Below are positions 1 to 61,901 of a DNA stretch of 64,000 nt, piece by piece (position 1 is the first letter of the stretch; each line of letters begins with the position of its first letter). The stretch covers positions 33,914,001-33,978,000 of the forward strand of contig NC_083239.1 of the NCBI RefSeq assembly GCF_032191835.1. The letters run 5' to 3'. A program made the position numbers and the translations under genes. Under the pieces are notes generated by a model. That model saw only the letters and a list, made by a program, of their open reading frames with translations, was not told the origin of the DNA and ran no database searches. The DNA comes from Heteronotia binoei. Taxonomy: Eukaryota.

Positions 1-281
1 CCCTCGTGCTCAGTTGCACGGATATTGGTATGTGAAAGACAAGCGAAGTCGGAGGCCACGTTTAGTGGCCACCAGTAACCCAGACAGAATTAAGGAGATA
101 GACCCTCGCGTTCAGCATCGTTTTGAAGTGTCAGGGCCAGAACTGAACCAAGGCAACTGCTCCCTCGCCATCCATCACGCCGAAGCAGCTGACCAGGCGA
201 TTTACCACTTCCGAATGGAAAAAGGCCACAACAAATACAGCTACTCTACAGCAGAAGAAAGCCTGTCCGTCATCGTGACTG
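1..281 (+). CDS. CD33/MAG-like Siglec, V-set (sialic-acid-binding) exon, 5' part outside window
   Basis: Frame open from base 2: ..HGYWY..LVATSN..RFEVSG..GNCSLAI..IYHFRMEKGHNKYSY..LSVIVT. Carries the Siglec essential Arg (FRME) and the KYSY aromatic motif. Phase-1 donor G|GTGAGT at 281/282. Confidence 0.85.
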
Positions 282-438
282 GTGAGTGCCTGAAAGGAGG
301 GTGCTGGGCTCTCTCTTGAAGTCCCCATCTGATACATTTTCCCCATCATTTTGCAGCAGAGTTAGATCGGCTTGCCCAGATTGTCTCTTTCAAGGCAGGC
401 AAATGGAATAGAGAGGGGATCCAAAGGCAAGGCTGGGT

Positions 439-731
439 TAAAGGTAAAGGTAGTCCCCTGTGCAAGCACCAGTCATTTCCAACTCTGGGGTGACGTCACA
501 TCACGACGTTTTCATGGCAGACTTTTATGAGGTGGTTTGCCATTGCCTTCCCCAGTCATCTGCACTTTTCCCTCAGCAAGCTGGGTACTCATTTTACTGA
601 CCTCAGAAGGATGAAAGGCTGAGTCAACCTTGAGCCGGCGACCTGAACCCAGCTTCTGCCGGGATCAAACTCAGATCGTGAGCAGAGCTTCAACTGCAGT
701 ACTGCAGCTTTACCACTCTGCCCCACAGGCT
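439..731 (-). mobile_element. Sauria-type SINE
   Basis: Reverse complement of the 752-1043 copy; ends in an (ACCTTT)-like tail on the minus strand. Confidence 0.75.
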
Positions 732-751
732 GGAATAACCATATGCTAATA

Positions 752-1043
752 GGGGCTCCTGTGACGGAGTGGTAAGCTGCAGTACTGCAGTCCAAGCTCT
801 GCTCACAACCTGAGTTTGATCCCAGCGGAAGCTGAGTTCAGGTAGCCTGCTCAAGGTTGACTCAACCTTCCATCCTTCTGAGGTCAGTAAAATGATCACC
901 CAGCTTGCTCGGGGGAAAGTGTAGCTGACTGGGGAAGGCAATGGCAATGTAACAAAAAGTCTGCCAAGAAAACGTCATGATGTGACATCACTTCATGGGT
1001 TGGTAATAACTCAGGGCTTGTAGAGGGGACTGCCTTTACCTTT
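752..1043 (+). mobile_element. Sauria-type SINE
   Basis: Head ggggctcctgtg..gagtggtaagctgcagtactgc, body ..ttccatccttctgaggtc..ggggaaggcaatggcaa.., tail ggggactgcctttaccttt. Confidence 0.75.
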
Positions 1044-1249
1044 AATAGGGGCACCTTCTGTAATAGGATCATGTTCCAGGGGAGTGGGGAAAGAAGAGAA
1101 ATCTGTCTTGCGGTTCCAGTAATTGAAATGAAGGGAAGTTGGTGAGCTGAAATACCAGACTGGATGTGGCAGGAAGGAGATTGTAAGCCGCTCTGAGACT
1201 CTGAGTGGAGGGCAGGGGATAAATCCAACTTTTCTTCCTTTCTCTTCAG

Positions 1250-1534
1250 AAAGAAAACCAGATATAACTCTTTTTGGATTACTGAGGGCAGGGCAGGTAG
1301 CAACCATCACTTGTATAGCCTATCGGAGTCCTTCTTCAGACCAGCCCAAGATCACCTGGACAGGCATTTCCGGAGGGAAAAGCTTTCAGCGTGTGCGCAA
1401 TGATAGAGTGGAGAGTTACCTAGACTTCACACCTACAGCAGCAGACCATCTCCAAAACATCACCTGCAAAGCCACTTATTTCAGAGTGTCTGAATATGTG
1501 ACTGTGGACAGGACAATCACCCTCAAGGTCAACT
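1250..1534 (+). CDS. Siglec-like gene, C2-set Ig exon
   Basis: Acceptor ttctcttcag|, donor T|GTAAGT, phase 1-1. Peptide ERKPDITLFGLLRAGQVATITC..PKITW..LDFTPTAADHLQNITCKATY..RTITLKVN. Confidence 0.85.
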
Positions 1535-2695
1535 GTAAGTGGATCCTCAGATCGCAAGCCCCATCGTAAAGGGTGTTCATTTACACCAGGTGCCCCCAAC
1601 CTTTTTGAGCATGCGGGCACCTTTGGAATTCTGACAAAGTGATGGGCATAGCCACAAAGTGGCTGCCATAGGAGCTGGAGCCAGCAACAAAATGGCTGCC
1701 AATCAAACCTTCAAAGGCCAATCAGAAGTCTTGCTAAGTAAAAGTTCCATCTGGTCCTGCCCACTTCATAAAAACACTTGGCAGAAACTGGGAAAGTTGT
1801 CAGTGGGTGGACATCATGTTGGGGACTCCTCAATTATAACAGTGCTGATCTAAAATATGGGTCATTACTAGGGATGCCAGGTCATCCTTGGCCACTGGCT
1901 GGGGATGGGGTTTAGGGTTGCCAGATCCAGACTGGGAAACTCCTAGAGATTTGGAGATGTAGCCTGGGGAGGACAGTGGGGTACAATGCCAAAGAGTCCA
2001 CCCTCAAAACCATACATTTTCTCCAGTGATTGGAACTCTGCAGCCTGGAGATGAGCCGTAATTCCAGGGGATCCCCAGGTCCCACCTGTAGGTTGGCATC
2101 CCTGCATCTGGACCTAGGTAGAGTCTGGCAAAAAGTTAGATCAAGTGAATTCTAGTTAAATTGTGTTTCTGAAGGGTACTTCCTCAAACTTCTGGAAACC
2201 GAAGCACACTTTTTTTCTCTGAATGAAATGAGAGATACACTTTGCTCTTATGCCCCAGGGTAGAGTGGGTTGTGTAAGGCCCCAAACTAACAGCTGTTTG
2301 GCTGTGGCTAAGCTGCATCTTCCTAATACTGTTTTAGACTGAGCCAAGCCATTGGTCCAGCCAGTTCAACATTCTCTGTACTTTTTGACTGTGACTTTCC
2401 AAAGTCTTGGCCAAAGAAAGGCCATTCCCAACACCTCTCTGCTGCCCCAGCCTTTAAATGGAGGTGGCAGAACCTCAACCCAACCTGCATGTTGAATGCA
2501 AATCATTGCTCTTCCCCTCCCACTAGAAGCTGTAGGGCAATGTGGGAACTGTGATGCCAAAGCCTGTCTGTGGCTGGAGGGCTTAGACAAATACAGCAAG
2601 CTTAATGTATTTTCTTATTCCTGACTGAGGATGGGTATTCTTGGAGATTCTCTCCTATGCTTTGCTGCCACCTCACCAGAGAGATCCCTTATCGG

Positions 2696-2878
2696 CAGGG
2701 CTTTTTTTAGTAGCAGGAACTCTTTTGCATATTAGGCCACCACTCCCTGATGTAGCCAATCCTCCTGGAATTTACAGTAGGCCCTGACCTAAGAGCCCTG
2801 TCAGCTCTTGGAGGACTGGCTACATCAGCGGGGTGTGGCCTAATATGCAAAGGAGTACCTGCTACAAAAAAGGCCCTG
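2696..2878. mobile_element. Palindromic hAT-type MITE (cagggc-tttt..aaaa-ggccctg family)
   Basis: Terminal and internal inverted repeats; 8-bp flanks cttatcgg/attatcag (6/8). Related copies near 7325-7455, 13395-13527, 47700-47868 and 63870-63990. Confidence 0.65.
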
Positions 2879-2909
2879 ATTATCAGCCATGCTTGTCTCT
2901 GTGTTACAG

Positions 2910-2960
2910 ATCCCCCAAGGAAACTACAGTTCCCCGGGCACCTTACACGTCCCAGCGGAG
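2910..2960 (+). CDS. Siglec-like gene, 51-nt linker exon
   Basis: gtgttacag| and G|GTAAGT, phase 1-1. Peptide YPPRKLQFPGHLTRPSG, in the position of the short linker exon of CD33-related Siglecs. Confidence 0.75.
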
Positions 2961-3677
2961 GTAAGTTTTCAATCTGTTTGGGGAGCTACACATTCGCACA
3001 GATAGCCACACTAAATAAACCGACCCACACATTGCAGTACATATTTGACAAGCTCTTCCTCTGACTTTTCCATGTTTCTGGAAAGACAGCGAGGCCCAGT
3101 CTAGTTTTACGTATTCCGGTATGAGAGTTGCCTTCAGTTCCTTCCTCTGTGGTTTCTCTGCTCTTGTGCAAATCAAACCTTCTCCGCCTATCTGTAAAAC
3201 AGGCATAATAAGCAACTAGCAGTCACAGAACCTTTATTGGCGTAACAACAACAGTATCAAATCAAGGAAGCAGGGGGGAAAAGGTGGTTAATTAAACATT
3301 CTAAACAGACTTCTCCTCTTATAAGCACAGTAAAGGAAGTTTGCCACCACTTCGATGGTTTCAGTCTTACTTGAGGCTAGTAAGCTTACTATCTTGCTTT
3401 CATCAGATTTACCCTCCAGAGATTGCAATAGAGGATCCAAGTAAAATGCATGTCAATCACAATAGAATCTACAGGATAAAAGAACATAGTCTGTTCCTTC
3501 CCACAGGGAATGGTATTTTTTTTAAACCTCCTGTATAACATGGCAGAAGGAAGCACATTAAAATGCTATAAAATGATGATGATGATGATGATAATCAACT
3601 AATTCCAGATTATCAAAGATTTCAGGTTTTCACAGCTGGTAACATCATTAGGGTTTGTAGAATCTTTCAGACTCAAG

Positions 3678-3842
3678 NNNNNNNNNNNNNNNNNNNNNNN
3701 NNNNNNNNNNNNNNNNNNNNNNNNNNNNNNNNNNNNNNNNNNNNNNNNNNNNNNNNNNNNNNNNNNNNNNNNNNNNNNNNNNNNNNNNNNNNNNNNNNNN
3801 NNNNNNNNNNNNNNNNNNNNNNNNNNNNNNNNNNNNNNNNNN
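3678..3842. other. Assembly gap (165 N)
   Basis: Run of N in Siglec intron 3, flanked by inverted copies of the same ~30-bp sequence. Confidence 0.99.
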
Positions 3843-4087
3843 GGCACTTGAGCCCGAAAGATTCTACAAACCCTAATAATTCCAGATTATTAATCCATGT
3901 AAACCAGACCCTCCTCCCCCTTTTCAGCTATCCATTCCTAAAATAGGCAACTCAAATCCTCTTGTGTTGTGCTGGGGAAGTTTGCTTATTCAGTGGTTTT
4001 TTGATAGGGAAGATAAACTAGGCAGGGCTGGTTGCCAAAGTTTGAGAGCCATGATAGGCAATGCCTTGTCCCTCTGGATTCTTGCAG

Positions 4088-4347
4088 ATGTGCGGCACTT
4101 CACAAACTTCTCCCAGATCGTTCCCCAGGAAGGCGACTCTCTCGTGGTTCATTGCGAGGTGGACAGCAACCCTGAGAGCTTTGTGAGCTGGAAGCTGAGA
4201 TTCCCAGGAACTCGCCTCCACATATATAATGACGAACTGAGGCTTTCAAAAATGGAATCAGAGGATGAGGGTAAATACGAGTGCCGGGCAAGCAACACTG
4301 AAGGTTACACTGAAGGCAGCATCTACATCCGCCTACATCGCGAGTGA
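4088..4347 (+). CDS. Siglec-like gene, third Ig-domain exon (reads through to TGA at 4345-4347, or is spliced at a GC donor after 4339)
   Basis: Acceptor cttgcag|. Peptide DVRHFTNFSQIVPQEGDSLVVHCEVDSNP..SW..LRLSKMESEDEGKYECRASN..IYIRLHRE*. The expected phase-1 donor position reads C|GCGAGT rather than GTGAGT. Confidence 0.8.
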
Positions 4348-4657
4348 AGCAAAACTTGGGACTTCGCGAGAGGCCGTTTGTTGGGATTTGCCAGCCATCA
4401 GCACAATATAGAAGCACAGTACAAAGAAAATGTCCTGGTAGGGGGAGACTCAATATATAGGAATTTGCAAGGCAGCAGTGAAGTTTACTGCTATTTACCC
4501 CATCTCACCCTCAGTTTCCTGATGTGGTAAAAATATGTTTTAGTGGATCTTCATCTCTCTCTGCACTGTTTGTGTTCCACTCTTTTTCTCTCCCTTCTTC
4601 TTGGGTTCCCATATGATATCTATATCTTGGCATTTTTGTTGTCTTTTCACATAAGAA

Positions 4658-4968
4658 AAGCCATGTTGGATCAGGCCAACGGCCCATCCAGTCCAACACT
4701 GTGTGTCACACAGTGGCCAAAAAAACCCCAGATGCCTTCAGGAGATCTATCAGTGGAGACAGGGCACTAGAAGCCTTCCCACTATTGCTCCTCCCAAGCA
4801 CCAAGAATACAGAGCATCACTGCCCCAGAGAGTTCCAACAATACCCTACGGCTAATAGCCACTGATGGAGCTCTGTTCCATGTTTATCCAATCCCTTCTT
4901 GAAGCTGGCTATGCTTGTAGCCACCACTACCTCCTGTGGGAGTGAATTCACCAGGGTGTGGGAAAAAA
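4658..4968 (-). mobile_element. CR1 LINE 3' end fragment
   Basis: Reverse complement matches the ORF2 end and 3' UTR of the CR1 at 24406-25243 (gaattcact..caggaggt..ccatcagtggctattagcc..ccaacatggc). Further tail-only copies at about 8755-8935 and 14070-14356 (+). Confidence 0.75.
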
Positions 4969-5942
4969 ATCAGACGACTATACTGCAATGGCAGGGCCCT
5001 GAAGTCAGAAACCCCCACACACACACCAGCTGCTCAACCATTCACCCTTTTCATGGTAGTGCAAAGTGCTGCCAAAGCCGCATCTGGCTTACAGTATGGA
5101 GCGCCCAAGGATAGCCAAGGCTGCATTTCCATGCACTGTCTTTTGTGAGCTAAATCTCTGACCCTCCCCCTCAACCTAGCTTCCAAAGATTGCAAAATCT
5201 CTGGGGCAAGGACCGCACCAACTCTGTGGGGGGTAATGCCCTTCACAGACTGTGGCAGTTCAGTAGCACCCCCCCCCAATGGTAGCAACGTTAGTACATC
5301 TTGTCAAAGGAAGTTGCTCATTTCCTACATTGTTGACAAGTTGGCTCCATGTGCTTTTTTTGCATGCCCACCATCCACCAAGCAGGCATAACACATACGA
5401 AGAATGAAAACACCAAAAATCTCTTTCCGTCTTGCTTAATCCTGGCTGGCTTGTGTTGACTACTGAAGCCATGAGATCTTGTAAAACTGCTTTACAAAAG
5501 GCCTAAATTGAACTTGTCACACCAAGAGCACAGACGTTTTGTTTATTCAGCAAAAGGTCATCAGATGCTGCACATTCTCCTCTGCTATTTTATTCTAGTT
5601 CTCTCTTATCTTCCAAGTTTTCTTTTGGGTGAACTATTCCTTAGAGCAAGGGTGGCCAACCTTGCTTAACATAAGAGTCATATAGAATAAATGTCAGATG
5701 TTTGAGAGCTGCAAGATAGGGAGGGAGGGAGGAAGGAAAAAATAGATGGGGGAGAGAGGGAAGGAAGCAACTTAAAATGCATTCTCCAAACTGCCAGCTG
5801 GCTTGGAAAAGTGATTTAAAGAGACAAATGCCTTCTCCAAGCTGGCTGACGTGGTAGTGGGGGCTTTGAGAACCACATATGTGCGAAAGAGGCATGTGGC
5901 TCCCGAACCACAGTTTCAGTAATAGCATTAGAAAACAGCACG

Positions 5943-6069
5943 TGTCCAATAGCACCCTAAAGACTAACAAAATTTGTGGCAGGGCATGAGCTTTTGTGAG
6001 ACACTATTCTGACTCAGGAAAGCTCATACCCTGCCGCAAATTTTGTTACTCTTCAAGGTGCTACTGGAC
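5943..6069. mobile_element. Inverted pair of Penelope-like terminal-repeat ends
   Basis: Arms of about 51 nt (5943-5993 and 6019-6069) are near reverse complements and carry the aaagctcatac..ttgtta..aaggtgcta tail seen in other copies. Confidence 0.6.
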
Positions 6070-6189
6070 TCTTGCTCTTTTCTACTGCTATGGCCTAACA
6101 TGGCTACCCATCTGGATCATTAATAGCAAGAACAGATATAGAATTAGCATTCGCCATTTGATGAAATATAACCACCGATGTGCTTGCAG

Positions 6190-6263
6190 TGGCTTCACCT
6201 ACGACGGACCTGATCCATTTATCATTCACATTGCTGTGCCATTTCATTCACATTGTCTTGTAA
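6190..6263 (+). CDS. Candidate terminal exon of Siglec-like gene (hydrophobic C-terminal tail)
   Basis: Acceptor gtgcttgcag|, phase-1 compatible with 4339. Encodes (L)ASPTTDLIHLSFTLLCHFIHIVL*, with AATAAA at 6319-6324. Confidence 0.4.
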
Positions 6264-6872
6264 CGAAGAGCATTAAAAAAGTCAATGAAACATACAATTT
6301 GTTTGCAAAAGTGCTTCAAATAAACTGTTGTAATACCGCTAAAACACCGCATCTGTGTCTTCTTACCCACCAGAACCAGAAAAAGGAACCAGGTCTACAG
6401 ACCAAAGAGGAAAGTTGTATAGCTCTTCCAGAAACGATACAGTTCCAATAGATTTCCAAGGAGTTTCCCCTATTGCAGGGTAGCCATCAAGTGACTTTTG
6501 GCATTTGAATGTGAGGCACGGAAAGCACACACTTGGCATTGATCCTAACAGTTGTGAAAATACAGGAGGCAGAAAGAAAAAGTAGCCTCTATGATCTTAG
6601 GCCAAGCCATTCATGTAAACAAACTAGATGCCATGATGTGAGTGGACCCTCCACCCCACAGCTATTTCAGAGTCTTCTTTTGCAGCTGCTAAGGTCTGCA
6701 ATTCAAACCATGAAGAGAATCACGGAAAGTGACTATTAAGCAACGGAAAGAGCCTTGATAAATAGCTAATACAATATTAAATTCTGATTTATTTCTATAA
6801 CGCTCTGTAGAAGTACATATAAAATTCCTATAAGCAAAAATTCATATAATATAAATATGAATATAAAAACTC

Positions 6873-7116
6873 ATAAGCAAACAAAATTTACAAAAGGCAA
6901 CAGGCTCAGAGTTGAACAACAAAGTGCTTGTGCAAAAAGTCTATGAGGTTTCAAAGCCCATAATATATCCAAAATGTGGTAGTTTTGGACGTCTAACTAC
7001 CAGATTTTGCATCCATTATAGGCTCTGAAGCATCATAAAGACTTCCTGCGCAGGCATTTTGTTGTTGAAAGTAATAACTCTGAGCCTGTTGCCATTTGTA
7101 AATTTTGTATGCTTAT
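6873..7116. repeat. AT-rich fold-back (long inverted repeat)
   Basis: Outer 41-nt arms match at 39/41 positions; the inner arms are similar with indels; ~10-nt loop at 6985-6994. Confidence 0.75.
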
Positions 7117-7877
7117 ATGACCTGGTGAATTCTTATATGCTTATATATACTTATGCGAAGCTTTATATAAATTAATCAAAATTTAATAATCAAAATTTAT
7201 CACAGATTTTCCCCCTTGCTAAGGTCTCCAATGCAGCCTCGAGAAAGTGGCATAGCAGAGGATGACTATTTCTCCCCTACCGTGTTTTCAGATTTGGATT
7301 CTAATGCTTGTTTTAATCAGGATGTTGCTGTTGTTTTTGTATCAGGAACTACTCTGCATATTAGGCCACTGCCCCTGATGTGGCCAATCCTCCAGGAGCT
7401 TACAGGGCTCTTATTACAGGGCCTACTGTAAGCTCCTGCTACAAAAAAAAACCCCATGGTTTTAATACTGATAATTTTTATGCTCTTGGTTTTATTGCTG
7501 TACTTTTACTTTGTGAACTGCCTCAAGCAAGTCCTAGGAGCAGCAGCCGATGTATCTTCATCATTCACAAAATATGGGGGGCGTCTCAGCTGAGCTTCAA
7601 ATAATAGCACGGCTGAGAAAGCCAACCTGTTTTAAGATCTTGTTGCCCAGAAACCTATGCGGGAGTAAGTTACGGAACACCCTGGCGGTAGGAGGAATGA
7701 CCTGCTTCGCTGTGGAAGGAGGGAACATCCAACATCCTAGGTACTTATTTATTCATACGTTACTTTCATTCCTTGAAACGCCAAAGACACACAATATAAG
7801 ACTCACACTACCCCCCCCCCCCAAAATCCCCAAGGACTGAGACAACCACCCCAGCTCCATCCTGCTTTCCCCAGTTT

Positions 7878-21209
<13,332 letters not shown>

Positions 21210-21360
21210 TTCTGGCCCTCTATCCGAAGCCAGGCCAGGCGACTAGTTGCCGCTTCCGGGAGCAGATTCCGGAAGCTGGCAAAGAGCCTGATGGGACTTG
21301 TAGTCCGTCAAAAAAAAAAGCCATCAAGAGGGAGGGACTCTGGGAGTTCTAGTCCAGTGA
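21210..21360 (-). promoter_or_regulatory. PSMC4 CpG-rich promoter
   Basis: CpG-rich from 21000 to 21300; ETS-type TTCCGG/CCGGAA pairs at about 21253-21275; two ZNF143-associated ACTA(C/G)AA.TCCCA motifs on the minus strand at 21292-21304 and 21341-21353. Confidence 0.7.
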
Positions 21361-50834: not shown

Positions 50835-53800
50835 TTATTATTTATAATAATAATAATAATAATATTTTATTTTTTTATTATTATTTTTTATTTTTTTATT
50901 TTTATTTTTATATCCCGCCCTCCCCGCCAAGCGGGCTCAGGGCGGCTAACAGACATGGGAGTCCCATGATTCATATAAAACAACATAAACAGTTTTAAGT
51001 ATATCAATTACAAATAAATTATTTAAAATAGATAAAATATATAAAATAGGTGCTAAAATACTGTAATAATGTACACAAGATGGCTAGATGTCCGCTCGTT
51101 GAATTAATCAGGTTCTATCTCGAAAGCCAGCTGGAAAAGAAATGTTTTGCAAGCCCTGCGGAATTGGTTCAAGTCCCGCAGGGCTCGCACCATCTCTGGA
51201 AGGTCGTTCCACCAACGAGGGGCTATCACCGAGAAGGCCTGCTCCCTAGTAGCCTTCAACCTAACTTCTCTTGGCCCAGGGATTGTTAGTAAGTTCTGAA
51301 AACTAGATCTCAGCGCTCTCTGGGGCACATATGGGGAGAGGCGGTCCTTTAGGTAGGCAGGTCCTCGGCCATATAGGGCTTTAAAGGTGATAACCAGCAC
51401 CTTATAGCGAACACGGTATACAACCGGCAGCCAATGCAGACTCCGCAGCCCAGGCCGTGCAGGTTCCCACCGTGGTAGTCCCTCCAGCAGCCTGGCCGCC
51501 GCATTCTGGACTACCTGAAGTCTCCGTGTTCGGTACAAGGGCAGCCCCATGTAGAGGGCATTGCAGTAGTCTAATCTCGAAGTGACCGTTGCGTGGATCA
51601 CAGTTGCTAGGTCGGTGCGCTCCAAGAAGGGAGCCAACTGCCTCGCCCTCTTAAGATGAAAGAAGGCGGATCTAGCAGTGGCGGCCACCTGGGCCTCCAT
51701 TGATAAGGAGGATTCCAGTAGCACTCCCAGGCTCTTGACTTTGCGCACTGGTACCAGTGGCGCACCGTCAAAGGCCGGTAAAGTAATCTCCCCTCCCGGT
51801 CCGCCGTGGCCCACGCAAAGGACCTCAGTCTTCGCCGGATTCAACTTCAGCCCGCTCAGCCTGAGCCAGTCAGCCACGGCTTGTAATGCCCGGTCCAAAT
51901 TTGTAGGGACATCACCAGCCCGGCCGTCCATCAATAGATAGAGCTGGGTGTCATCTGCGTATTGATGACAACCCAGCCCGTACCTCCGCGCAATCTGGGC
52001 AAGGGGGCGCATGAAGATGTTAAACAGCATCGGGGAGAGAACTGCTCCCTGGGGCACTCCACAATGAAGTGGGTACCTCTGAGACCGCTCCCCCCCAATT
52101 GCCACCCTTTGTCCCCGACCATCAAGAAAGGAGGAGAGCCACTGTAAGGCTAGCCCCCGAATTCCTGCGTCGGCGAGGCGGGTCAGCAGCCGGTGGTCGA
52201 CCATATCGAACGCAGCCGATAGGTCTAGCAACAGCAATACCGCCGAGCCGCCTCGATCCAGTTGTCGTCGGAGGTCATCCATGAGGGCGACCAAGACTGT
52301 TTCTGTCCCATGGCCCGGGCGAAAGCCGGACTGGCATGGGTCTAGGACGGAAGCGTCCTCCAGAAATTCCTGTAACTGCACCGCCACGGCCCTCTCGATA
52401 ATTTTGCCCAAAAAGGGCAAATTTGAGACCGGCCGGTAGTGTGCCAATTCGGCCGGGTCTGATGACGGTTTTTTCAAGAGAGGGCGGACCAATGCCTCTT
52501 TCAGGGGTGTTGGGAAAACACCTTCTGAAAGGGATCGATTTATAATATCCCGTATAGGATATCTTAATTCCTCCTGGCAGGCCTTAATTAGCCAGGAGGG
52601 GCATGGGTCCAGGTCACCGACTTCCTCCAAGCTGAGCGGGTCGAAGCAATCCAGAATTAAATCAGAAGACACGCATTGGGCTTCGAGTCCACTTACTGCC
52701 TCCAAATTGGCGGGGCAGTCCTGGCGGAGCGATTGGACCTTATCCGCAAAGAATTTCGCAAAAGCCTCACAGCCAATCTCCAATTCCTTAGCTTTTGAAT
52801 TGCCTTGAGGCAATGTAGTCAGATTCCGAATTATTCTAAATAATTGGGCTGGGCGCGAATTTGCAGATGCAATCTTAGCCGCAAAGTATGTTTTCTTTGC
52901 GGCCTTGATTGCCATCTCATAGGACTTCATAAACTTCCTGTAAGATGTTCTAGTCGCCTCGTCACGCCTCGTATGCCGCCATTGCCTCTCTAGCCGTCTA
53001 AGGCCTTGTTTCAGCTGGCGTAATTCCGGGGTATACCACGGAGCCAGCTTAGTCCGAGGTCGCAGAGGGCGCCGAGGTGCGATCTCCTCGATGGCCCTAG
53101 AGAGCCGGCTATTCCAGGTCTCAATCAGGCCATCGAGGGAGTCGCCAGAGGGCCAGGGGTCCCGCAGAGCCATCTGGAACCGTTCCGGGTCCATTTGGCT
53201 CTGCGGGCGAGCCATAATCGGCTCCTCGCCTAAACAGGTTTGGGGGAGCATATTTACACGGGCCTTGAGGGCGAAGTGATCAGACCATGGCACTACCTCT
53301 GCGGTTATATCGCTCACTACAATCCCGGCCGCGAAGATCAGGTCTAACATGTGTCCGGCCTGGTGAGTGGGGGTTACAACAAATTGAGAGAGTCCCAGTG
53401 TCGCCATGGAAGACACTAGGTCCGTCGCCTGACTGGAGGACGGGTCATCAGCATGGACGTTGAAGTCACCCAGGATTATCAGCCTTGGGTGCTCCAGCGC
53501 CCAGCCTGTCGCCGCCTCGAGCAGGGACGGTAAGGCGTTGGCCGGTGCGTTAGGCGTACGGTACACCAGCCAAATCGCCAACCCCTCTTCACCCCCCCAC
53601 GCCAGACCGGCACATTCAATGCCCTCAATCTTTGGGGCCGGGAGCGCCCTGAAGGAGTAAGCCTCCCGTGCAAATAATGCCACTCCTCCCCCCCGCCCGC
53701 TAGTCCGCGATTGGTGGAAGACCGAGTAACCTGGGGGAGCTGTTTGCGTGAGGGCTACTGTATCACCCTCCCGGATCCAGGTCTCAGTCACGCAAGCCAG

Positions 53801-54080
53801 GTCCATATTCTGCTCAAGCATAAACTCTCGGAGAATTGAGGTCTTATTATTAATGGACCTGGCGTTGCATAGCACCAATGACGGAGACGGGTTACACCTG
53901 GCCCTACTGCCTGTCACCCTTGGGATGGGCCGCAGATTGGAGGGGGGCCGAGCACCGACTTGTCTCTGTCCTCCTCCCTTATAATATCTGCTCCCACCGC
54001 CATACCTCCCCCTCCCCAGGAGCACTGGAATCCCTGAGCCGGCCATTCCTCGCTGGCAGCAGCTGCGATAAAGACCACTA
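50835..54080 (-). mobile_element. L2-clade LINE, young copy without a recognisable ORF1
   Basis: Open ORF2, 3' UTR, terminal tgttagccgccctgagcccg..gggcgggatataaa and an (AATAA)n/(ATT)n tail; many intact CpGs. Confidence 0.93.
51104..54046 (-). CDS. L2 ORF2: APE endonuclease + reverse transcriptase, 980 aa
   Basis: APE motifs CNARS, VTETW, GDFN, PTH..GH.LD, SDH; RT motifs YRPVS, QSGFR, DLSAAFD, GVPQG, YADD; C-terminal RLDYCN. Confidence 0.93.
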   Translation of the reverse strand: MAGSGIPVLLGRGRYGGGSRYYKGGGQRQVGARPPSNLRPIPRVTGSRARCNPSPSLVLCNARSINNKTSILREFMLEQNMDLACVTETWIREGDTVALTQTAPPGYSVFHQSRTSGRGGGVALFAREAYSFRALPAPKIEGIECAGLAWGGEEGLAIWLVYRTPNAPANALPSLLEAATGWALEHPRLIILGDFNVHADDPSSSQATDLVSSMATLGLSQFVVTPTHQAGHMLDLIFAAGIVVSDITAEVVPWSDHFALKARVNMLPQTCLGEEPIMARPQSQMDPERFQMALRDPWPSGDSLDGLIETWNSRLSRAIEEIAPRRPLRPRTKLAPWYTPELRQLKQGLRRLERQWRHTRRDEATRTSYRKFMKSYEMAIKAAKKTYFAAKIASANSRPAQLFRIIRNLTTLPQGNSKAKELEIGCEAFAKFFADKVQSLRQDCPANLEAVSGLEAQCVSSDLILDCFDPLSLEEVGDLDPCPSWLIKACQEELRYPIRDIINRSLSEGVFPTPLKEALVRPLLKKPSSDPAELAHYRPVSNLPFLGKIIERAVAVQLQEFLEDASVLDPCQSGFRPGHGTETVLVALMDDLRRQLDRGGSAVLLLLDLSAAFDMVDHRLLTRLADAGIRGLALQWLSSFLDGRGQRVAIGGERSQRYPLHCGVPQGAVLSPMLFNIFMRPLAQIARRYGLGCHQYADDTQLYLLMDGRAGDVPTNLDRALQAVADWLRLSGLKLNPAKTEVLCVGHGGPGGEITLPAFDGAPLVPVRKVKSLGVLLESSLSMEAQVAATARSAFFHLKRARQLAPFLERTDLATVIHATVTSRLDYCNALYMGLPLYRTRRLQVVQNAAARLLEGLPRWEPARPGLRSLHWLPVVYRVRYKVLVITFKALYGRGPAYLKDRLSPYVPQRALRSSFQNLLTIPGPREVRLKATREQAFSVIAPRWWNDLPEMVRALRDLNQFRRACKTFLFQLAFEIEPD

Positions 54081-54678
54081 TCAGGCTGGTATCTGATTAT
54101 TGTGAGTCTCTTCTCATAATGTGCCCAAAGTGCGATAGACAGCTAGATAGCCTCAGTTTTGTCATTTTTAGCTTCTAGGGAGGTTCCTAGAGTAGACCAT
54201 TTTAGCTCCTTACATTTTTTGTTTATCCTTTTAGAAATGCAATCCAACTTGTGTTCACAAGAAGCAAGCTGCCTTTCAGGTAACACAAAGCCCCTTTTCT
54301 AGAAGTAGCAAAATGGTGCTCCCCCAGGACCAGCAATCGAGAGTAACACCCTTGTGTCTTATCCAGGAATAAGGACATTGCTTTATTTTTTTTCTCAGTT
54401 GTCTGATTTCAGAGCCAGACATTCACATCAGAGTTGCGATTCTAGCATAATGATTCAAGATTTCTAACACTTGGTGAGGGGGATCTATCCAAGGATGGTT
54501 GGGGTAGACGGGACAACGGAACACATGTATCCAGGGGTCAGCCCCATTCAATTTAATGAGACTTCCTTCTAAATAAAAGTGCTGACAGTCTGTTTACAAG
54601 ATGGGTCACTGGAAAAAATGGAAATAGTTTCTGGGAGGCGCTTCCTCACTCCAAGAGGCCTCTGCCAGAATTACATGC

Positions 54679-61901
<7,223 letters not shown>

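Follow-up and report, generated by a model that had tools for sequence, protein, structure and literature searches.

What does a Siglec gene encode when nothing seems to follow its last immunoglobulin (Ig) domain? Siglecs are understood as membrane-bound receptors for 'self' sialic acids that pass signals into immune cells, and to our knowledge soluble forms are known only as side products. The question is raised by a Siglec-type gene at the start of a 64,000-nucleotide (nt) stretch of the gecko Heteronotia binoei (assembly GCF_032191835.1, contig NC_083239.1, positions 33,914,001 to 33,978,000 of the forward strand), hereafter the window. A preliminary description of this DNA had offered two products for the gene, a soluble protein with three Ig domains made by reading through the last Ig exon, and a form anchored by glycosylphosphatidylinositol (GPI), for which a terminal exon was proposed at 6190-6263. 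The analysis reported here makes it likely that the locus is a Siglec-type gene encoding an ectodomain only, with the third Ig exon (exon D) as the terminal exon, and that its product should be secreted.

Exons and domains of the gene

The gene was followed on the + strand through four exons, A (V-set), B (C2-type), a linker and D (Ig), which agrees with the three Ig exons and linker exon of the preliminary description. All joints are in phase 1 and use canonical GT/AG sites. The signal-peptide exon and the beginning of the V-set lie upstream of the window, and only the 3' 93 codons of the V-set are inside it. The features of the locus are listed below in window coordinates; a slash marks an exon border.

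1..281, + strand: V-set exon (exon A), 3' part only, cut by the window start; phase-1 donor ctg/gtgagt
1250..1534, + strand: first C2-type Ig exon (exon B), phase 1 to phase 1
2910..2960, + strand: linker exon, 51 nt, Y PPRKLQFPGHLTRPSG, phase 1 to phase 1
4088..4347, + strand: coding part of the third Ig exon (exon D), including the stop codon TGA at 4345-4347; protein end ..GSIYIRLHRE
4344..4345, + strand: vestigial donor GT (cga/gtgaag), aligned with the donor of a Eublepharis paralogue and overlapping the stop codon
4348..6640, + strand: 3' untranslated region (UTR) of the terminal exon, matched by RNA contigs at a depth like that of the exons and aligned collinearly with Gekko (74-78% identity)
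6190..6263, + strand: putative GPI-signal exon of the preliminary description, not an exon but part of the 3' UTR
6319..6324, + strand: AATAAA polyadenylation signal, common to Gekko kuhli, Gekko japonicus and the Eublepharis paralogue

Searches were run exon by exon, without a joined model of the spliced protein. With Pfam, exon A was identified as a V-set (E 7.9e-8) and exon D as Ig_3 (E 3e-10) and I-set (E 9e-10), all above the cut-offs, and exon B was matched by Ig_3/C2-set_2 only below the curated cut-offs (E 4e-4 and 6.5e-4). The best matches of the V-set piece among solved structures were Siglec-8, CD33, Siglec-5 and Siglec-7 (E 4e-12 to 8e-9). In the structure-sequence comparison, YHFRMEKG of the window aligned on YFFRLERG of Siglec-8 (FRMEKG on FRLERG). 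Therefore, the arginine that binds the ligand is retained, as had been claimed, and it is invariant in 10/10 aligned gecko proteins. The cysteine pattern of Siglec V-sets was also found, with the E-strand Cys present in exon A (NCSL) and YHF where ordinary V-sets carry YxC; the B-strand Cys is visible in the orthologues only (IPC), its counterpart in the window being upstream of position 1.

Both cysteines of the disulfide that normally joins the V-set to the C2 domain have been replaced, with GLR in the V-set of the orthologues and YRSP/HRSP in the C2 domain; in the window, the C2 exon (1310-1330) is without the second Cys normally bonded to the V-set. This loss is common to the window, G. 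kuhli, G. japonicus and the protein P0001, whereas the paralogues keep both residues. Judged from the alignments, the joint loss of the pair suggests a coordinated, coherent structural change rather than decay. For the G. kuhli orthologue, a fold model (mean predicted local distance difference test score, pLDDT, of 72) had as its best matches MAG Ig1-3, CD22 d1-d3 and the Siglec-10 and CD33 ectodomains. By these comparisons the protein would be a CD33-related Siglec-type lectin, predicted to bind sialic acid.

The end of exon D and the DNA beyond it

The letters at the end of exon D are atc/gcgagtga, and reading through them gives ..IRLHRE followed by TGA at 4345-4347, exactly as the preliminary description had it (c/gcgagt and then a stop). 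In the Eublepharis paralogue, a working donor at this border (..cat gta aca g/gtgagac) is spliced 1.4 kb downstream to a mini-exon encoding GQQDAYKDYSEYYEP. The end of exon D aligns among the gekkonids as cgc ga/gtgaagc in the window, cgt ca/gtgaaac in G. kuhli and cgt tga/gtgaaac in G. japonicus, and in this alignment the donor homologous to that of the Eublepharis paralogue is the window GT at 4344-4345, which is a weak donor with A at -1 and A at +5, and not the GC at 4340 that had been proposed as a phase-1 donor. That proposal retains one point in its favour, as both Gekko species carry GT (CGT codon) at the position of 4340. On the alignment, a phase-1 donor may have been lost there, yet nothing downstream would be left for it to join either way.

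A stop codon at or overlapping the old donor was found in 3/3 gekkonids (window, G. kuhli and G. japonicus). The TGA overlaps the donor GT in the window and in G. kuhli, and stands just before the GT in G. japonicus, where it is therefore exonic regardless of splicing. The protein ends as ..GIYVHIQRQ in G. kuhli, two residues past the Ig domain as in the window, and as ..IQR in G. japonicus. With the stop found at this place in two other species, the earlier caveat that the GC could be a variant or a sequencing error is unlikely to matter. A clear homologue of the Eublepharis terminal mini-exon was not found in the window, where it would be expected at ~5000-5050.

The expression of the gene was followed in three small metatranscriptome runs of one study (X1, X2 and X3), available as assembled contigs, from animals 97-99% identical to the window. 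The borders of exon B match contig ends exactly (X1 record 1, X2 record 9 and X3 record 16), and spliced contigs join exon B, the linker and exon D in RNA; in X2 record 9, exon B is followed by the next 49 letters and then by exon D from 4086. Read-through at the end of exon D was seen in X1 record 3 (394 nt), which runs from three letters upstream of the exon-D acceptor (4086) unbroken through 4339-4347 to 4489. Other X1 contigs continue downstream at 4491-4677, 4706-4814, 4910-5670, 6051-6306 and 6336-6533, and X3 record 23 spans 6074-6638. The depth of the downstream contigs (2.7-14.4 in X1, 3.5-4.4 in X2 and 4.3-5.2 in X3) is in the same range as that of the exon contigs (8.4, 3.9 and 3.2, respectively), and depth was 0 in all three runs in the unique intron bins 2201-2600 and 3001-3200 and also in bin 6801-7000. 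Therefore, with coverage through the stop at exon depth and the silent introns as a control, exon D is a long terminal exon (~2.3-2.5 kb). Its 3' UTR of ~2 kb extends to the AATAAA at 6319, which had been noted before and is conserved, and the 3' end falls between about 6340 and 6640. Of the two outcomes that the preliminary description had wished to see compared in RNA, a 4339 to 6190 junction and read-through to 4347, only the latter was observed, no joint at 4339 being among those listed. The gene is thus real and expressed in gecko RNA.

As the next gene, PSMC4, is convergent, any further 3' exons of the Siglec gene must fall within 4340 to ~7450. The DNA of 4340-7900 is gap-free in the window assembly and collinear with two other genomes. 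Positions 4343-6706 are collinear with both Gekko loci at 74-78% identity, compared with 83-86% for the exons; this downstream DNA is less conserved than the exons, contains frame-breaking indels and has no conserved open frame. When the C-terminal 160 residues of 160 relatives were compared by tblastn with 4300-7900, only noise was obtained (best E about 0.01), and no transmembrane or cytoplasmic exon is conserved between exon D and PSMC4, in the window or in either Gekko locus. The C-terminus itself (..IRLHRE) is hydrophilic and without a hydrophobic signal of the GPI type. Since the predicted product has no transmembrane segment, cytoplasmic tail or hydrophobic C-terminus, it would be released from the cell.

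A hydrophobicity scan of all + frames in 4300-8000 revealed transmembrane-like stretches at 4544, 5574, 6040, 7029, 7283 and 7459, all of them in CT-rich or AT-rich sequence. The stretch at 6190-6263, ~60 nt ahead of the AATAAA at 6319-6324, was considered as a terminal exon and rejected: the AG of its preceding acceptor is replaced by GG in G. kuhli and G. japonicus alike, indels of +1 and +6 stand a little upstream of that position in G. japonicus, RNA contigs cross 6190 without a joint, and the stretch lies inside conserved non-coding 3' UTR. The GPI-anchored or membrane-bound reading of 6190-6263 is accordingly abandoned. The hydrophobic frame at 4544, which comes after a phase-1 acceptor at 4543 and is itself followed by HIRK, is CT-rich and does not survive in Gekko, where a 4-nt indel interrupts it. 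The candidate at 7459 is inside a Gekko-conserved block past the PSMC4 stop that was taken as PSMC4 3' UTR. A further block, 6309-6555, looked at first like a cytoplasmic exon (..TVPIDF); as it has stops and non-triplet indels in Eublepharis and holds the poly(A) signal, it was assigned to the conserved 3' UTR.

Two repeat insertions were observed in the 3' UTR. One, at ~4651-4946, is absent from the G. kuhli orthologue and was covered by RNA contigs at a depth of over 240,000, an enormous value that assigns it to a very abundant transcribed repeat family. The other, at ~5594-6011, is partly palindromic (5923-6000 against 6012 onward).

Gecko orthologues, selection and competing explanations

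Relatives were gathered by a full HMMER scan with the V-set piece and by a word search with its best annotated match; a word search with exon D alone gave no match, full-length relatives being outside the length range that it covered. The proteins closest to all four exons were P0164 of G. kuhli (K2H54_039745, 399 amino acids), with identities of 77, 70, 81 and 73% for exons A to D, and P0161 of G. japonicus (a fused, truncated 'Siglec-12' model), with 82, 74, 88 and 79%; the linker exon is thus 81-88% identical to its Gekko counterparts. At both Gekko loci the Siglec gene has PSMC4 convergent 3-4 kb downstream, the same layout as in the window. Therefore, given this layout and the closest match on all exons, both loci are syntenic orthologues of the window gene (70-88% identity per exon), and P0164 has the same stop. 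The orthologues are, like the window gene, devoid of a transmembrane segment. The alignment across geckos that had been suggested to check the read-through stop thus showed that G. kuhli and G. japonicus stop where the window gene does. The orthologues begin with the N-terminal signal MGC..LLLWEGVQC.

Beyond the signal peptide, no hydrophobic segment (best 19-residue Kyte-Doolittle mean <1) was found in P0003 (Eublepharis macularius XP_054855609.1, 'Siglec-14'), P0162 and P0163 (Gekko), P0165 (Sphaerodactylus), P0166 (Heteronotia) or P0167 (Eublepharis). In contrast, a transmembrane segment is present in P0017 of G. kuhli, which has four Ig domains, and in relatives from Varanus, Anolis and Rhineura. 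The gecko proteins fell into one clade (support 100/100) when a tree was built from the Ig1-3 region. Inside this clade, support was moderate (84/74) for joining the orthologue pair of the window gene to the group of P0003, P0165, P0162 and P0163, and P0017, with its transmembrane segment, paired with Heteronotia P0166 outside them. The sister group formed by P0003 and its relatives in Gekko and Sphaerodactylus likewise has three Ig domains and no transmembrane segment; its members splice to a small terminal exon encoding an acidic, Tyr-containing tail of 10-15 residues, whereas in the window gene only two residues follow the Ig domain.

Two further observations were made at these loci. G. japonicus (L004, 28593-30579) has two copies of the linker and Ig3 exons, separated by 1.2 kb; a frameshift interrupts the first Ig3, and a run of N comes after it. 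Either a recent tandem duplication or a duplication in the assembly may be responsible, and the doubled exons explain the odd fused, truncated database model of 641 amino acids. In Eublepharis (L001, 23856-25490), XP_054855609.1 is followed 8 kb downstream by another Siglec-like gene, with a V-set 64% identical to that of the window compared with 56% for XP_054855609.1; by sequence, it may be the true Eublepharis orthologue.

The selection acting on the gene was estimated from the four exon pieces aligned by codon (861 nt in total), the pooled ratio of non-synonymous to synonymous substitution rates (dN/dS) being summed over per-exon alignments. The values obtained were 0.41 for the window against G. 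kuhli (bootstrap 95% interval 0.27-0.57), 0.34 for the window against G. japonicus (0.22-0.49) and 0.29 for G. kuhli against G. japonicus (0.16-0.50), with per-exon values of 0.21 to 0.71, dS of ~0.34 and a bootstrap fraction of 0.000 for ratios >=1. No stops or indels were found in the 861 nt. These alignments point to purifying selection on an ectodomain-only protein in a comparison where all three species already stop after Ig3. Therefore, with the same architecture and stop in two Gekko orthologues and a coding sequence under constraint, the gene is maintained and not a wreck.

Whether the gene could nevertheless be a decaying pseudogene, or a truncated duplicate that lost its 3' exons and is drifting, was weighed against these data. 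The absence of transmembrane and cytoplasmic exons, the decayed donor and the lost interdomain Cys pair would fit such a history, as would the mostly non-synonymous changes (6/9) that separate the X1 contigs from the window in exons B and D. However, the dN/dS of 0.29-0.41 and the intact frame are not those of a drifting sequence, the transcript is correctly spliced, the stop position has been kept in three species, and the two cysteines were lost together, as in a coherent change. Decay is thus improbable. We regard as a shade less probable still that a donor at 4339 or 4343 is joined to an exon farther downstream, giving a membrane-bound or GPI-anchored isoform. The two candidates for such an exon, 6190-6263 and the 4544 frame, are each preceded by an AG acceptor and, in phase 1, translate into hydrophobic sequence, and the GT of Gekko at the proposed donor would suit it; but the first candidate loses its acceptor and the second its frame in Gekko, the contigs pass both sites unspliced with no 4339 joint among those listed, the tails of 160 relatives match nothing downstream, and the stop of G. 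japonicus is upstream of the GT.

It is hardly credible that the truncation is an error of assembly or base calling at 4341, with a true GT donor and the missing exons lost to an assembly problem. An assembly gap is near and the Gekko species carry T at the homologous base, but the gap is upstream and intronic, the DNA beyond 4340 is continuous and collinear with two genomes that are also without such exons, RNA contigs read through the site, and a T at 4341 would still leave no exon to join.

The ectodomain-only reading, which remains the likely one, has several points to set against it. The N-terminus is outside the window, and the signal peptide is taken from the orthologues. The Siglec-typical interdomain disulfide has been lost, and secretion and glycan binding are predictions from the sequence. 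The RNA evidence consists of assembled contigs from few small runs, without strand, true 3' end or tissue; 51 further joints outside those listed leave room for a minor spliced form. X1 record 3 differs from the window at 11 letters, 9 of them listed, and base 4341 of that animal may be among the other 2; across the contigs there are 65 letter differences beyond those listed.

Under the ectodomain-only reading, the old splice donor after the third Ig exon would have decayed, with an in-frame TGA overlapping it, and the mRNA would continue as the long 3' UTR to the conserved AATAAA. The protein would enter the secretory pathway through an N-terminal signal like that of the orthologues and, once in solution, would bind sialylated ligands through the conserved arginine site. 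There it could compete with the membrane-bound Siglecs of its own gecko family; a decoy or opsonin role towards sialylated microbes is also plausible. The wider proposal, that geckos have a small, old family of germline genes for secreted Siglec ectodomains only, in at least two lineages (the PSMC4-adjacent gene and the 'FYLHV + acidic Tyr tail' group of Eublepharis, Gekko and Sphaerodactylus) that are both under purifying selection and serve as dedicated soluble sialic-acid binders, is one to which we would give an even chance.

Neighbouring sequence and comparison with known Siglecs

Two other features border on the argument.

3678..3842, no strand: assembly gap in the intron from the linker exon to exon D, in the middle of an inverted repeat
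7878..7991, - strand: last coding exon and stop of PSMC4, a convergent neighbour whose 3' UTR reaches down to ~7459

The arms of the inverted repeat flank the gap at about 3644-3677 and 3843-3880. A stretch of 665 nt, 3219-3883, is without counterpart in the introns of G. kuhli and G. japonicus, both of which align on either side of it; it probably represents the insertion of a hairpin-forming transposon, at which the assembly broke. The 49 letters of X2 record 9 between exons B and D, plus 2 shared letters, add up to the linker exon (51 nt); the gap therefore contains no hidden coding exon and leaves the frame unaffected.

PSMC4 (26S proteasome AAA-ATPase), which the preliminary description had rightly named as the next gene, is on the minus strand with exons over ~13 kb (7878-21300). 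Its last coding exon is at about 7881-7991 and its stop at 7878-7880; the block past this stop, 7459-7880, is 82% conserved with Gekko and is taken to be the PSMC4 3' UTR. Farther along the minus strand, an open frame of 1012 codons (51107-54142) is probably open reading frame 2 of a long interspersed nuclear element, with endonuclease and reverse transcriptase, and exons of a trypsin- or kallikrein-like serine protease were seen at ~56550-61320.

With mammalian CD33, Siglec-5, -7 and -8, the window gene shares the V-set F-strand arginine in YxFRxExG and, as in CD33, a KYSY segment. Mammalian CD33-related Siglecs, which gave the best structure matches, also share with it the C2-type domains and the short linker exon. 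In contrast, these mammalian proteins are type-I membrane receptors with either tails bearing immunoreceptor tyrosine-based inhibitory motifs or a charged transmembrane segment, and the window gene has neither; the interdomain disulfide cysteines are also absent from it, unlike in the mammalian proteins.

A likeness is also found in sSiglec-5, sSiglec-9 and secreted Siglec-14, which are also ectodomain-only sialic-acid binders in solution. Free ectodomains of Siglec-5, -9 and -14 can be active, and anti-inflammatory or competitive effects are reported for soluble Siglecs (PMC5125011, PMC5579055, bioRxiv 10.64898/2026.06.24.734204). These forms are by-products of genes that also make a membrane receptor, whereas the window gene appears to encode the soluble form only: no transmembrane exon precedes PSMC4, in the window or in either Gekko locus, which places it outside the class of soluble isoforms of membrane Siglecs. 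The CEACAM decoys are derived from immune receptors and have kept the domain that binds ligand or pathogen, with signalling removed or altered (PMC11646289). They belong to a different family, and the window gene would be a putative decoy only.

A literature search returned nothing on reptile or gecko Siglecs, nor on a dedicated secreted Siglec gene. The gecko orthologues already exist as database models; no description of a dedicated secreted gecko gene was found in the literature. The entries of P0164, P0161 and P0003 are automatic models named by similarity ('Siglec-12/14'), and the present finding corrects the reading of models labelled simply in that way. The window gene would be a clear example of a receptor gene turning secreted, the decay of a donor creating the stop. 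If this is true, geckos would offer a natural experiment on what a free Siglec ectodomain does, be it competing with membrane Siglecs or masking or tagging sialylated pathogens.

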